DNA of 64,000 nt from Prasinococcaceae sp. CCMP 1430 (GCA_013416795.1 RQSC01000015.1:43696-107695), one strand, 5' to 3'. Shown: positions 1 through 43,000, counted from the first letter of the stretch. Notes: generated from the sequence alone by a model not told the origin. Program-made: numbers and translations.

Positions 1-3000
1 CGGTGCCCCTGCCGGCCAGCGCCGGGCGCGCGCTCGAGGCCGCGCGCGGCGCCGGCGTCGACGGCGCCGCCGACGGCGACGCCCTGGCGAGGGAGCTCCC
101 CTTCCTGCCGCCCATGTCCGCGGCGCCCACGCTGGAGGCCTCGGCGTCGATGGACATGCTCATCATGGAGGAGGCGGCCAGCGGCGGCTACAACCTCCCC
201 CACCTCGAGTGGATCGCGGGCGGCTCGGGCTCGAGCGCGGGGCTCGACCTGCGCCAGATGGTGGTGCACCCCGCGCCCGCCCCGCCGACGCGCGCCGACG
301 GCGCCGACGGCGCCGACGGCGGCGGCGGCGACGGCGGCGGGCACGCCCTCCAAGGAGGCGATCACGGCGCTGAAGGTCTGTGTGTGTGTGTGCGTGTGTG
401 TTGGATCGCGCGCGCGCGCGTGTGTGTGTGTGTGTGTGTGTATACGTGTGTGTGTGTTGGATCGCGTGTGTGTGTGTGTGTGTGTGTGTGTGTGTGCGAC
501 TCATGCACGAGAGCTTGCTTTGCGACATTTGTGTGAGCGTGTGTGCGAGGCTGTAAGCCAGGTGTGTATGCGCCATGCGCGTGTGTGTACGAGTCCGAGA
601 CGTGCGCAGCGCTGACACACACACGCACACGCACACACACACACACACACACACACACACACATACACACACACACACACACACACGCCGCGCCAAGGCG
701 GCTGCGAGATCGGCGGCGCCGTCGCCGGCGCCGGCGCCGACGGGTGCGTCGCGGAGGGCGAGGGTGGCGGCGAGGGCGGCGGCAGCAACGGGGAGGAGGA
801 CAGCCGCGGCGGCGGCGGCGGAGGCGGCGGCCCCATAGCGCGCGCGCGCCCGCCGCGGCGGCCGAGAAAGCGTCCGGGGATCGAGGTGCGGCGCGTGCGC
901 TCGCTCACACACGCACACACACGCACAAACACACACACACACACATGCGCATACACACACACGCACACACACACATGCGCACATGCGTACGCATACGTAA
1001 GCTCACACGAACGCGCGTACGTACACACACACACTAACACACACACACTCACACACACACACACACACACACACACACACACACACACACACACACACAC
1101 ACACAAACGGTGTGTGTGTGTGTGTGTGTGTGTGTGTGTGTGTGTGTGTGTCACACACATACACCTATACACACGCACAAACACACACACACACACACAC
1201 GCGCACGCACGCACCAACGCACGGCCGATCAGGTCGTCGGCGCGGGCGTCGAGGCGGCGGACGCGCAGGCTCTCGCGCGCCGCGGGCGCGGGCGCTACGC
1301 GCACGGCTGCGAGCACTACCGCCGCCGCTGCCGCCTGCGCGCGCCGTGCTGCGGGGAGCTCGTCGCCTGCCGCCACTGCCACAACGAGCGGTGCGACCAC
1401 GAGCTGCCGCGGAAGGAGGTGCGGGGCGCGCGGGCGGGCGCGCGGGCGTTACTGCCCGTGCGTGTGACGTGTGTGTGTGCGTGTGTGTGTATGTGTGTGT
1501 GTGTGTGTGTGTGTGTGCGTGTGTGTGTGTATGTGTGTGTGTGTGTGTGTGTGTGTGTGTGTGCGTGTGTGTGTGGATGTTTGTGTGGGCGGGCGGGGCT
1601 GTGTGTGTGTGTGTGTGTGTGTGTGTGTGCACTTCACATACTAAGATGTGCATGGCATGAGCACGCGCTGACTTGCATACGCACACGAACACACACACAC
1701 ACACGTGCGCATTCACACACACACACACACACACACACGCACACACAGGTGCGCAGCGTGGTGTGCTCGCTGTGCGGCATCGAGCAGCCCCCAGCGGGCG
1801 AGTGCGCGGGCTGCGGCGTGTCGTTCGGCGCGTACTTCTGCGCCACCTGCGTGTTCTACGACGACGAGGACAAGGGGCAGTTCCACTGCGACAAGTGCGT
1901 ACGCGCCGCGCGCGCGGGCGGGAGAAAGCGGCGGCGCGTGCATGCGCACGAGCGCTCGTGTGTGTGTGCGTGTGTGCGACACACACACACACACACACAC
2001 ACACACACACACACACACACACACACACACAGTAGGTGTGTGTGTGTGTGTGTGTGTGTGTGCGAGGTTGTCTTGTGTACGCGTGCGTGTGTGCGCAGTC
2101 GTGTGTGTGTGCGTCCGTGTGTGTATGCGCCCGAGTGTGTGGTTGTGTGTGTGTTTGTGTGTGTTGGATTGGTCTCGGAGCGTACGCCAAAGCAGCAGCG
2201 TGCACGCTTGCTGACACTCTCTCTCACTCTCTCTCTCACGCACGCACACACACACACACACATTCTCGCGCGGCGCAGGTGCGGCATCTGCCGCGTGGGC
2301 GGCGCCGACCAGTACTTCCACTGCGACAAGTGCGGCTGCTGCTACAGCGTGGAGCTGCGCGACAACCACAAGTGCGTGGAGCGCTCCATGCACTCCAACT
2401 GCCCCGTCTGCTTCGAGTACCTCTTCGACAGGTGAGAGAGCGCCTGCGCGTGCGCGCGCGCGCGTGCTCGCGTGTGCTCGCGTGTGCGTGTGCGTGCGCG
2501 CGTGTGTGTGTGAGAGGGAGAGCATACCCACTCGAAGCGTGAACATATCAGGACTCACCCATGCATCCTCACACACGCACACATACACACACACGCACGC
2601 ACACGGACACACACGCACACGCACAAACACACACACGCACACACACACGGTGTGTGTGTGTGTGTGTGTGTGTGTGTGTGTGTGTGTGTGTGTCACACAC
2701 ACACACACACACGCCCTCCCTCCCTCCTCGTAGCGTGGAGCCCATTCAGGTGATGCGCTGCGGCCACACCATCCACCAGAGCTGCTTCGAGCAGCTCCGG
2801 GGGCAGCAGATCTACAAGTGCCCGCTGTGCTCCAAGTCGGCGCTGGACATGGCGAGCGTGTGGTCGCACCTCAGCGCCGAGGTGGACGCCACGCCCATGC
2901 CCGACGAGTACACCGGCGTCATGGTGCAGGTGCGGACATGCACGTGTGCGCGTGTGCGTGTGTGTGCGAGTGTCTGCGAGTGTGTGTGGGCGTGGGTGGG

Positions 3001-40255: not shown

Positions 40256-43000
40256 TCACTCCTCGCGCACCTCGCGCAGCGGGCGAACGGGCACCCCCTC
40301 GCAGCCCTCGTTAGTGACCTCGATGAGCTCCCACAGCTCGATTCCCGCGCGCGCGCACGCCGCCTCGACCTCCGCGGCGCGCTCCGCCGGGGGCCACGCG
40401 CCGTCGGGCGTCGCCAGCATGGCGCCCGTGTATGCCTGCCCCGCGTGTGCCGCCGCGCCGCTGTAGTAAAAGAGCGCCCAGCTCAGGTCGTCCGCGGCGC
40501 CCACCACGCGCCACAGCTCCTGCCGTGCGTGTGCGTGCGCGCGTGCGCGTGCGGGTGCGCGTGCGTGCGAGTGCGCGCGCGTGTGTGCGCACGCGTGAGG
40601 CGGTGGTGTGGGAATGGCCACGGCGGGGGGGCTGTCAGCGCCCAGCACCACGCATTGACACGCTCATATATGCACCCACACACATGAAAACACGCACACG
40701 TGCACACACACGCGTGTGCGAGCACACGCGCGCGCGCGCACTAACGCACCTTGGACACCACGCCGCTGTCGCGGAAGGCCAGCTCGTACACGCCGGGGGT
40801 GAACGACGGCCGCACGCGCGCCGCCGTCGTCGGCGCGCCATCGCCGGACGCAGGCGCCGACGCGGCGGCGCCCGGCAGCGCGGCGCGCCGACAGCTGTAG
40901 TCGCTGGTGCGCCACATCGCTCGCGGCTCGTCCTCGAGGCTGTACACCTGAGAGACACACGCAAACGCAGAGGGTCAGCTTGGGACAAATACGAAAACAC
41001 GCGCGTACGCACACGAAACACGCGAGCTCGCGAAAGCACACACACTGTCGCACGTGCACGCACGTGCGCAATGCGCGCATGCACAGACACACCACACACA
41101 CGCACGCACACAGGTACACACACACGCACGCCAACGCGCACGCGACAGACACACGCACCTTGAACGCCGGGTTGTACCACATCGACCCCCTGGCCCTGCC
41201 GCGGTAGAAGAGCTGGTACTGGCACGGGAAGTGCTCGTACGCCGGGTTGAGCCCCGCGCAGGCGATCCAGCTGTGCCGCAACACCCTCCTGCCGCCGGGG
41301 CCCGACGCGGAGGGCGCGCGTGCGTGTGTGTGCGCCTCCGGCGCGTGTGTGTGCGCCTCCGGCGCGTGTGTGTGTGCGTGCGTGCCCGCGGCGCCGTCCA
41401 TCTGGTCCGCAAGGTCGTCCGCCGCGTCCGCGACCGCCTGCGCCGACGCGCGCCGAGGTCAGCTGCTTGCACGCACACGCGTGCACGCACGCACGCACGC
41501 ACACTCACACGCGACAAGCCATGGTCACACACATCGTACACATACACACACTCACGCGTACACACGCACACACACGCGCACGCGCACGTGCACACACGTA
41601 CACACACAAAGACAAACACAAACACACACACACGCGTGCACGCACGCACACACACACCCACACGCACCTCCTCCGGCGCGAAGGCCGCCGGCGCGAGCCC
41701 CTCCGGCGCCTCCTTCCCGAACCAGCCCACGTAGATCTCCTCGGCGGCCTCGTGCGTGAGCTCCGCGCCGCGCCAGCTGGCGAGCGGCGGCGCGAGCGGC
41801 GCCGCGCACGCCTCGGCGGCGTTGCCCATGCAGTTGTGGCGCTGGATGAAGCACGCGGCGAAGGACTCGAAGCGGGCGCTGTCGTACGTGCGCAGGCAGC
41901 GGTACATCGTCGCCTTGGTGGCGTGGGTGCGCGTGTGTGTGGGGTGCGGTCGCAGTGACGGTGTGGGGTACGAGGCGTCAGCCGTGGGCTCGCGCGGATG
42001 CGTGCGTGAGACACACAAACAAACACACACACGCACACACAGAGTAACCAAGCTTCAGAACTAATAGCACGAGCACGCACACACACACACACACACACAC
42101 ACACACGCACACGCAAACGCACACGCGGACGCACACACACACACACGCGCGCGCGCACACACACACGCACACGCGGACGCACACGCGCTGGCTCGCGCAC
42201 CTGGTCGTTGAGCCCCGCGGCGTCTACGCAGCGCAGCGCCCCGCGGCACGCGGCGTCGGCGTAGCACCTCGCGAGCTGCGAGGCGCAGTTGCGCGCGAGG
42301 CAGGCGGCCTCGCGCACGCCCACGCGCGAGTTGGCGCCGACGGCGGCCACCTTGCCCTTCGCGGGCGCCACCGAGGCGTCCGCGAGCATCAGCAGCAGGA
42401 AGAGGAGGTCGCCGGGCGTCCTGGCGTTGGTTTGCATGCGCGCGTGTATGCGGCGAGTCAGCATGCGCGAGCGACGCAAACACACACACACTTGCACACA
42501 CACACACACACACACACTTGCACACACACAAACACACACACACACACACACGCACACGCACACACACATACAAACACACACACACGCGCGCACCTCCTCT
42601 CGTAGAGCGCCGTGGCGGCGTTGACGAGCGCGGCGTCCTCGCTGGCGCGGCTCGCGGCGCCGTCCGCGAGCGCGCCGTGGCCAAAGGCGGCCAGCGCCAG
42701 CGCCTCGGCGGGGAGGAAGTGCAGGCGGTTCTGCGCGGCGAGCTCCGCGCCGCAGTCGAAGGCGAAGCCCGTCGGCACGGCGGCGAGGGCCGACGCCACG
42801 GAGGCGGACAGGCCCGGCGCCCCGTCGCCCCCCTCGTCGCCCCCGACGCCCACCGCGACGTAGTAGTCGGCGGCCGCGACGGCGCCGAGGACGGCCTCGT
42901 CGAGCTCATCAGCGGCTTCGACGTCGAGTTCGTGGTCATCACCGTCGTCGCGCTGCTCGTCCTCACGAGCCTGTGCATCGTGGGCGTGCTCGCGCTGTCG
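40256..43000 (-). CDS. VDR: Violaxanthin de-epoxidase-related protein (VDR); 5' end not resolved
   Basis: Exons give LYERRTPGDLLF..CLARNCASQLARCYADAACRGALRC..DQ / YRCLRTYDS..FAACFIQRHNC..AEEIYVGW / SW..AGLNPAYEHFPCQYQLFYRG..WYNP / ELWRVVGAADDLSWALFYYSGAA..GQAYTGA, typical of the VDR Cys-rich and lipocalin domains. Confidence 0.85.

Follow-up and report, generated by a model that had tools for sequence, protein, structure and literature searches.

We analyzed a 64-kb stretch of eukaryotic nuclear DNA (GC 67.6%) from the green alga Prasinococcaceae sp. CCMP 1430 (RQSC01000015.1:43696-107695), hereafter the window, with positions counted from its first base. Most of its curated introns carry TG or CA microsatellites, or both, in a common polarity, with TG repeats following the 5' splice site (donor) and CA repeats following a branch-like motif on the way to the 3' splice site (acceptor). 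Each array lies in dinucleotide phase with its own splicing signal, the segment between the motif and the acceptor is almost free of AG outside the repeats, and the two arms occur independently of each other. We consider it probable, with some reservation, that the two arrays in these introns are independent, each tied to its own splicing signal, seeded by slippage and filtered by the constraints of splicing, and that no hairpin between the arrays is required.

Polarized repeats in ordinary GT-AG introns

The intron sample consists of 34 self-curated GT-AG introns between coding flanks (8,026 nt, 12.5% of this one window). Candidate introns were taken from a purpose-built gene finder based on dynamic programming (DP), in which codon usage is scored and microsatellites earn no bonus, and the final curation was made by reading frame, donor and Pfam. 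The models of the DP gene finder were rejected as a final gene set; they merged neighboring genes and took CA tracts as coding. All 34 introns begin with GT and end with AG, and their consensus signals are AAG/GTGCGTG at the donor, a branch-like (G)CTGAC and a C-rich stretch plus CAG at the acceptor. The intron length agrees with independent codon-score frames (75 nt on each flank) in 31 introns, and the remaining three cases are explained by a boundary that is ambiguous by about 12 nt (376-697), a position before a terminal exon (26684-26936) and a donor that was corrected to 42200 (41914-42200).

Exons were searched against Pfam singly, not as a joined model. The zf-CHY profile continues across intron 1419-1748 (profile positions 1-38 and 41-68), the zinc_ribbon_6 profile across 2930-3325 (1-28 and 31-58) and the Thioredoxin profile across 27522-27795 on the minus strand (17-65 and 68-95), and these three are real introns because the profile coordinates are continuous across each of them. 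The domain order is also consistent across the exons of the CDK, CDC48 and VDE genes; the CDK exons match Pkinase profile positions in order, and the exons flanking intron 60430-60712 match CDC48_2 and AAA. Termini, restoration of frame and domains, and a yUnAy-type motif, whose use as the branch point is predicted from the motif, identify the introns as ordinary U2-type GT-AG spliceosomal introns. No Rfam family matches in the window.

The introns cited in a first-pass annotation of this DNA (376-697, 1419-1748, 2930-3325, 9282-9491, 9573-9895 and, on the minus strand, 27522-27795) are all present at, or within a few bases of, the positions proposed there. As described, they open with GT(GCG/GTG) and a TG-rich stretch, followed by CTGAC/CTAAC or CTCAC and CA repeats toward the AG. 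The further description, that a pyrimidine tract is often missing, holds only in part: CA repeats reach the AG in just three introns, and most of the others close with a short C-rich tail.

AC/GT is the main dinucleotide microsatellite in the window, with 77 runs covering 1,874 nt; AG, CT and AT runs of at least 12 nt are absent, and CG runs are short (22 runs, 296 nt). Merging gives 26 TG and 32 CA tracts, and 45 of these 58 tracts lie inside the 34 introns. On the sense strand, the skew of G+T minus A+C changes from +0.23 in the first third of the introns to -0.31 in the last (Wilcoxon p=3e-6), the automatically filtered intron set shows the same skew (p=0.001), and the 11 microsatellite-free introns show the same gradient in a weaker form. 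The share of TG/GT steps is 28-33% in the interval from +6 to +60 and falls to 6-10% in the interval from -60 to -6, CA/AC steps behave inversely, and each kind makes up about 10% of steps in the flanking exons. Alternating purine-pyrimidine steps account for 76% of steps in introns versus 58% in flanking exons. The order has exceptions, all in the CHY/RING gene: intron 886-1232 reads CA-TG-CA, and introns 1895-2278 and 2432-2733 are compound.

The polarity reported in the first-pass annotation is thus real and, as described below, tied to splicing landmarks. The argument offered there, that the arrangement flips in minus-strand genes and is therefore a property of the RNA strand, is flawed. 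Because 5'-(TG)n...(CA)n-3' is its own reverse complement, such a flip cannot prove a property of the RNA strand, and an antisense reading of these introns gives the same skew profile (+0.17 to -0.18). Strand specificity is shown instead by the sense-strand bias of the branch-like motif and by the 3'-ward extension of both arrays.

Anchoring of the two arrays on splicing signals

The motif CTRAY (CT[GA]A[CT]) is found on the sense strand in 29 of the 34 introns, exactly once in 28 of them, and only 4 times in total on the antisense strand. On the strength of this motif, CTRAY is the predicted branch point. The repeats switch at this motif: 17 TG tracts lie upstream and 1 downstream, whereas 4 CA tracts lie upstream and 12 downstream (Fisher p=4.5e-5). 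Counted in nucleotides of repeat runs, TG contributes 782 and CA 277 upstream of the motif, and TG contributes 56 and CA 661 downstream of it. The base composition is G 37%, T 21.5%, C 28% and A 13% between donor and motif, and C 48%, A 24%, G 18.5% and T 9.7% between motif and acceptor.

Of the 39 TG runs whose start lies no more than 100 nt from the donor, 36 share the period-2 phase of G+1, which corresponds to 15 of 17 introns (p=0.002). Across all 34 introns, the frequency of G at odd positions is 0.77 at +1 to +20 and decreases to 0.43 at +81 to +100, while G at even positions stays at 0.17-0.24 and the even positions are 64-76% pyrimidine. The 12 CA runs that begin no more than 40 nt 3' of the motif all keep the register of its last C (8/8 introns), and C at in-phase positions holds at 0.62-0.76 for more than 100 nt after the motif. 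The CA runs show no phase relation to the acceptor (13/24), and the donor and branch registers are mutually independent, with 14/29 sharing a register.

With an arm defined by at least 16 nt of repeat runs, both arms are present in 9 introns, the TG arm alone in 8 and the CA arm alone in 6, while the other 11 introns lack either arm. The co-occurrence of the two arms is not above independence (Fisher odds ratio 2.06, p=0.49; within-gene permutation P=1.0). Both-arm introns are concentrated in two genes, and their arm lengths are anticorrelated (rho -0.68, p=0.04).

AG exclusion and acceptor choice

When CA runs are removed, the sequence 3' of the motif contains 6 AG in 1,473 nt, compared with 46.9 +/- 5.3 expected from 2,000 composition-preserving shuffles (minimum 28). 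Five of the six residual AGs sit 2-5 nt from the branch A, as CTGACAG, and the sixth belongs to a tandem GAGCAG acceptor. In 16 introns the acceptor lies 14-49 nt from the predicted branch point, and in 13 it lies 64-261 nt away; these 13 long-distance introns contain 3 AG in 988 nt outside CA runs, compared with 33.9 +/- 4.5 expected. AG is thus depleted over more than 40 nt from the motif to the 3' splice site, as in an AG exclusion zone, and with its high C and low T content this AG-free zone is not filled by a long polypyrimidine tract.

In 32 of the 34 introns, the first AG that lies 6 nt or more 3' of CT[ACG]AY is the acceptor required by the reading frame; the exceptions are the intron with the tandem acceptor (26684-26936) and an intron with two in-frame acceptor candidates (21811-22155). 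Introns richer in CA have a longer predicted distance from branch point to acceptor (rho 0.60, p=6e-4), and in 13 introns no yTnAy is found within 10-60 nt of the acceptor.

A proposed model of signal-seeded arrays

In the account that we favor, GT/AC, the only kind of microsatellite that is abundant in this genome, would have expanded as two independent arrays, each tied to a splicing signal. The donor array, (GY)n with GT decaying to GC, would begin at G+1 and grow 3'-ward in donor phase, and the branch array, (CR)n with CA decaying to CG, would begin at the AC of (G)CTGAC and grow 3'-ward in motif phase. Both may have originated by replication slippage from proto-repeats within the signals, GTGCGTG at the donor and CTG-AC at the branch, with growth in 2-nt steps and subsequent decay by transitions without odd-length indels. 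The splicing grammar would then act as a selective filter on the repeat orientation that persists. A G/U-rich, A-poor segment between the 5' splice site and the motif would keep the branch motif unique, and a C/A-rich, G/U-poor, AG-free segment between the motif and the 3' splice site would keep the acceptor the first AG even at 64-261 nt. The CA tract would serve as a tolerated AG-free spacer and as a substitute for the pyrimidine tract, and TG-CA pairing would be possible where both arms are present, with splicing having no need of it.

Several points weigh against this account. The base is small, 34 introns from one 64-kb window, the exon models are self-built and checked by frame arithmetic and Pfam continuity, and the branch points are predicted from the motif. 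The donor lock is partly automatic for arrays that abut the donor; without those, 10 of 12 introns are in phase (p ~0.04). CA-rich sequence can occur upstream of the branch motif (38990-39201, 27946-28136 and 886-1232), and the compound CA-TG-CA introns are at odds with simple seeding. AG exclusion alone cannot account for the missing TG 3' of the motif, because (UG)n is also free of AG, and an additional constraint has to be assumed there, be it avoidance of G, avoidance of decoy GU or the preference of a factor. A slippage origin with selective filtering is also indistinguishable from positive function in these data.

A stronger version, which is possible although we doubt it, is that the spliceosome of this alga routinely uses branch points 60-260 nt from the acceptor with a U-poor CA or C/A tract replacing the polypyrimidine tract, either through altered U2AF/SF1-type recognition or through pure first-AG scanning, and that the signals seed phase-locked arrays, so that splicing grammar and microsatellites shape each other.

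Catalogue of introns and of tracts outside them

The window contains genes for a CHY/RING zinc-finger protein, a thioredoxin-domain protein, a CDK, a VDE-like protein, a SAM methyltransferase and CDC48, in addition to cyclase-like and ACBP-like genes and an E1 ubiquitin-activating enzyme gene. The E1 gene has no introns, and its best non-self matches are in Viridiplantae at ~60% identity. The MMETSP transcriptome collection also records a 1067-aa protein identical to one of the window. The 34 introns are as follows, with distances given from the motif to the acceptor AG.

A1, 376-697, plus strand: CHY/RING gene, 322 nt, both arms; 95 nt of TG runs from +4, CTGAC at 82 nt, then 64 nt of CA runs; alternative acceptor 708
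A2, 886-1232, plus strand: 347 nt, donor GTGCGG; CA at 906-1105, a perfect (GT)21 at 1110-1151, then CA again; CTAAC at 195 nt with no AG between; the palindromic junction puts the sole TG run of any size 3' of a branch-like motif
A3, 1419-1748, plus strand: 330 nt, both arms; 132 nt of TG, CTGAC at 77 nt, 49 nt of CA up to the AG
A4, 1895-2278, plus strand: 384 nt, donor GTGCGT, frame-consistent; TG-CA-TG, branch motif, CA; palindromic (AC)26/(GT)13 junction at 2031/2036; CTGAC at 64 nt
A5, 2432-2733, plus strand: 302 nt, donor GTGAGA; no CTRAY, CTCAC at 176 and 162 nt; CA, (GT)22, CA, then a CCCTCC-type C/T tail
A6, 2930-3325, plus strand: 396 nt; imperfect TG arm and long CA-type arm; CTGAC at 261 nt with 0 AG between
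B1, 5235-5354, plus strand: cyclase-like gene, 120 nt, GTAAGC...ACAG, frame-consistent; CTRAY at 14 nt; no microsatellite
B2, 6545-6801, plus strand: 257 nt, no microsatellite; CTRAY at 124 nt, the sole AG between lying 3 nt from the branch A
C1, 9282-9491, plus strand: small gene (ATG 9165), 210 nt, both arms; (GT)n from +1 and (CA)n to the AG; CTCAT/CTCAC at 66 and 57 nt
C2, 9573-9895, plus strand: 323 nt, both arms; 29 nt of TG and 154 nt of CA; branch-like motifs at 203, 153 and 103 nt
X2, 21538-21691, plus strand: 154 nt, donor GTGCGTGCGTG, CA-only; CTCAC at 93 nt, then 87 nt of CA
X3, 21811-22155, plus strand: 345 nt, CA-only with 147 nt of CA; acceptor 22155 or in-frame 22134, the latter favored by the first-AG rule
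G1, 36762-36947, plus strand: 186 nt, GTGCGTGCGT; short TG arm only; CTRAY at 40 nt
G2, 37800-37985, plus strand: 186 nt, no microsatellite; CTRAY at 45 nt
M1, 38668-38786, plus strand: methyltransferase gene, 119 nt, TG-only; CTGAC at 33 nt
M2, 38990-39201, plus strand: 212 nt, CA-rich throughout, upstream of the motif; CTAAC at 29 nt
M3, 39419-39622, plus strand: 204 nt, CA-type arm only; CTGAC at 138 nt with 0 AG between; acceptor set from the methyltransferase reading frame
M4, 39734-39819, plus strand: 86 nt, no microsatellite; CTGAC at 25 nt
Z1, 56065-56184, plus strand: 120 nt, GTGCGT...TGCAG, no microsatellite; CTRAY at 33 nt
P1, 60430-60712, plus strand: CDC48, 283 nt, no microsatellite; CTRAY at 151 nt with 0 AG between and no CA run
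P2, 61670-61864, plus strand: CDC48, 195 nt, no microsatellite; CTRAY at 42 nt
T1, 27946-28136, minus strand: thioredoxin-domain gene, 191 nt, donor GTGCGA, CA-only with 90 nt of CA; CTGAC at 113 nt with 0 AG between
T2, 27522-27795, minus strand: 274 nt, both arms; 22 nt of TG and 89 nt of CA; CTCAC at 136 nt and TTCAC at 27 nt
T4, 27036-27183, minus strand: 148 nt, TG-only; CTGAC at 32 nt
T5, 26684-26936, minus strand: 253 nt, CA-only with 102 nt of CA; CTGAC at 194 nt
T5 acceptor, 26684-26689, minus strand: GAGCAG, an in-frame tandem of the NAGNAG type, the sole intervening AG lying 3 nt before the acceptor
K3, 30146-30402, minus strand: CDK, GTGCGT donor, no microsatellite; CTRAY at 30 nt
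K2, 30455-30895, minus strand: CDK, GTGCGT donor, no microsatellite; CTRAY at 39 nt
K1, 31005-31129, minus strand: CDK, GTGCGT donor, no microsatellite; CTRAY at 49 nt
V1, 42421-42593, minus strand: VDE-like gene, 173 nt, TG-only with 87 nt from +9; CTGAC at 37 nt
V2, 41914-42200, minus strand: 287 nt, donor CAG/GTGCGC at 42200; 73 nt of TG and a C/A-rich tail; CTGAC at 64 nt
V3, 41438-41667, minus strand: 230 nt, TG-only; CTGAC at 21 nt
V4, 40948-41158, minus strand: 211 nt, TG-only; CTGAC at 27 nt
V5, 40520-40749, minus strand: 230 nt, short TG arm and imperfect CGCA-type tail; CTGAC at 115 nt, the sole AG between motif and acceptor lying 2 nt from the branch A
Y1, 47336-47460, minus strand: ACBP-like gene, 125 nt, no microsatellite; CTRAY at 44 nt

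Intron C2 contains a tandem repeat at 9683-9894 on the plus strand (TRF, period 50 x 4.4), whose unit carries CTAAC/CTAAT and CA-type repeats; its three branch-like motifs are equally spaced because the 50-nt unit is tandemly repeated.

The other 13 of the 58 merged tracts lie outside the curated introns. Three TG...CA modules are found 5' of start codons and may be introns of the 5' untranslated region (UTR). Two of them are these:

28252-28590, minus strand: candidate 5'UTR intron of the thioredoxin gene, TG-rich and then CA-rich, ending in CGCAG 15 nt before ATG 28237, downstream of an AT-rich promoter-like stretch
38240-38460, plus strand: TG...C/A-rich module between stop 38183 and ATG 38486, with (TG)n at 38250-38305 and then C/A-rich sequence up to the TAG at 38459; candidate 5'UTR intron or intergenic

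Long TG or CA tracts also lie just 3' of stop codons, at 10076-10197, 22340-22470, 56842-56866, 3814-3910 and 28889-28918. These occur in either sense orientation: CA follows the stop at 10076 and probably also at 3814 and 28889, and TG follows it at 22340, at 56842 and probably at 38250. They may be 3'UTR sequence, UTR introns or intergenic sequence.

The right-hand third of the window (43000-64000) has a single TG/CA tract, 56842-56866, despite at least five curated introns, and its genes (E1, ACBP and CDC48) are of the housekeeping type; the repeat load thus varies strongly between neighboring genes and regions.

Alternative explanations

The reading that ranks second, although we regard it as rather unlikely, is a code read by proteins, in which the arrays are positive elements for UG-binders (CELF, TDP-43 or RBM24-like) and CA-binders (hnRNP L-like) or for an altered U2AF. 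In vertebrates, CA-repeat (hnRNP L) and UG-repeat (TDP-43/CELF) intronic splicing elements are individual regulatory elements in particular genes. The repeats of the alga have the same sequences and likewise lie within introns near splice sites, but they form a general intron architecture with strict polarity. Such a code is consistent with the strict position of the arrays relative to the donor and the branch motif and with the weaker gradient of the same kind in microsatellite-free introns, and the U-poor tract between motif and acceptor suggests non-classical recognition there. However, the 11 introns without repeats, including all those of CDK and CDC48, show that the arrays are dispensable, the array length is highly variable (8 to >150 nt), and slippage from the signals explains the phase lock more simply.

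The first-pass annotation had proposed that the UG and CA tracts of an intron fold into a hairpin that brings the splice sites together. If splicing were assisted in this way, pairing of (UG)n with (CA)n would join the splice sites or shorten the branch-to-acceptor distance and would be needed or strongly beneficial, which we consider clearly unlikely. The nine both-arm introns are predicted to fold very stably, at between -0.57 and -0.64 kcal/mol/nt, and in six of them 42-97 base pairs span the branch motif. There are precedents in the repeat-bridged introns of zebrafish (PMC4691745) and in yeast, where splicing can depend on a structured region between branch point and 3' splice site (PMC3239191). 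However, 14 of the 23 repeat-bearing introns have a single arm, and the chance-level co-occurrence, the anticorrelated arm lengths and the unrelated registers described above all argue against a joining duplex. The CA-only introns T1, T5 and M3, with predicted branch distances of 113-194 nt, have no partner arm, and in C1, where TG begins at +1, pairing would bury the 5' splice site. CA-only introns are predicted to fold weakly (-0.24 to -0.32 kcal/mol/nt), and evidently functional introns overall range from -0.24 to -0.64 kcal/mol/nt in predicted folding. A TG-CA duplex may form and matter in some introns, but a hairpin as a general requirement for splicing is not supported.

It is very unlikely that the arrays are a pure mutational by-product, generated by transcription-associated strand bias or local slippage hot spots and incidental in position to the splice signals. 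The dominance of AC/GT microsatellites in the window would agree with such an origin, as would the retention of dinucleotide phase, which slippage predicts, and the point-mutation rate of introns in Prasinoderma coloniale, the highest of any compartment (PMC11884799). However, a uniform transcription-coupled bias cannot switch orientation within each intron at the motif, the tracts after stop codons occur in both sense orientations, and the AG depletion extends to non-repeat sequence, which points to selection.

A DNA-level origin, from an introner-like mobile element family with TG...CA termini or from palindromic insertions, is hardly credible: TG...CA is reverse-complement symmetric and palindromic (CA)n-GG-(TG)n junctions are present, but all-against-all blastn of the introns with repeats masked returned just 17-43 nt low-complexity matches and no shared family with defined termini, the CA array is tied to the branch motif and shows no lock to the end of the intron, its register is unrelated to that of the donor, and single-arm introns are common.

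The palindromic junctions, of the form (CA)n-GG/AGTAG-(TG)n, lie in introns of the CHY/RING gene at 1105/1110, 2031/2036 and 2648/2650. Judged by their sequence, they would form tight local hairpins in the opposite, CA-then-TG order.

Lineage specificity and relation to known systems

A metagenome scan with the E1 protein recovered 80 E1-bearing eukaryotic contigs at 46-62% identity, a scan with an exon of the large gene recovered no relative, and no close relative is among the matches of the scan. The 80 E1 contigs (965 kb from environmental picoeukaryotes, 16 of them above 62% GC) serve as a control for repeat density only: perfect TG/CA runs of at least 12 nt occupy 29.3 nt/kb in the window versus 0.24 nt/kb in the control. 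The TG/CA intron architecture therefore appears to be lineage-specific. The lineage-specific splicing code suggested in the first-pass annotation survives as an architecture that is linked to splicing, but not in its hairpin mechanism as a requirement. Neither the P. coloniale genome paper nor the mutation-accumulation paper (PMC11884799) mentions intron microsatellites, and full-text literature searches found no description of such an intron architecture in algae.

The closest known systems differ from the alga in several respects. Teleost (AC)m-(GT)n introns likewise have complementary AC/GT repeats at opposite intron ends within one lineage, and very stable intron-spanning duplexes are predicted where both arms occur (PMC4691745). 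In zebrafish, however, the repeats are arranged with AC after the 5' splice site and GT before the 3' splice site (PMC4691745). The alga, as the first-pass annotation had pointed out, has the opposite order, with UG after the donor and CA before the acceptor. The main evidence for the bridged class in zebrafish was that the two repeats co-occur more often than independence predicts (Lin et al., 2016; PMC4691745), whereas the arms in the alga show neither excess co-occurrence nor matched lengths. The CA array of the alga is moreover anchored on the branch motif, and the host is a green alga.

Human introns with distant branch points are a minority linked to alternative exons, with a polypyrimidine interval (Gooding et al., 2006; PMC1431707). 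The introns of the alga resemble this class in the long AG-free interval after a branch consensus and in the use of the first AG as the acceptor. In contrast, 13 of the 34 introns, apparently constitutive, span 64-261 nt in the alga, the filler is (CA)n or C/A-rich and U-poor, and the branch points are predicted from a motif and not mapped. Yeast introns in which the region from branch point to 3' splice site has to be structured (PMC3239191) share the long distance, which RNA structure could shorten, but in the alga long distances also occur in CA-only introns that lack a complementary arm.

Other features of the window

An imperfect CA-type tract at 41324-41376 lies in an apparent coding exon of the minus-strand VDE-like gene, where it encodes an insert rich in His/Thr/Ala/Pro; the first-AG rule marks it as exon and not intron. 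The spacer 3' of the CHY/RING gene contains an 8-nt TTGCGACA-type tandem repeat of ~11 copies (3481-3574) and a 120-nt unit repeated twice (4124-4363).

A tandem family of ankyrin-repeat genes with 99-nt (33-aa) periodic repeats occupies 10566-26369 on the plus strand, and its members share near-identical segments, for example at the ends of 12456-12750, 15891-16209, 20126-20443 and 24296-24613. A lone N at 21110 lies directly 5' of a (GT)n tract of 109 nt, at a point where one of the ankyrin paralogues apparently stops short, and looks like assembly uncertainty at a microsatellite edge. Two further Ns are found elsewhere in the window.

Implications

Gene finders and assemblers will mishandle introns of this kind, with their many in-phase GT donors, their CA tracts that read as His/Thr coding sequence and an N at a repeat edge. 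The phase locks give a concrete and testable account of how the consensus of a splice signal could seed microsatellites, and through it the idea that splicing constraints decide which strand orientation survives can also be tested. The introns also provide a counter-example to those of zebrafish, with the same complementary repeats in the opposite order and without the co-occurrence signature of a bridging duplex. If the predicted branch points are real, a third of the alga's introns have their acceptor 60-260 nt away across a U-poor CA tract. If so, the alga would offer a natural system in which to study by what means a 3' splice site is recognized when no classical polypyrimidine tract is present, and over what distance first-AG scanning can work.

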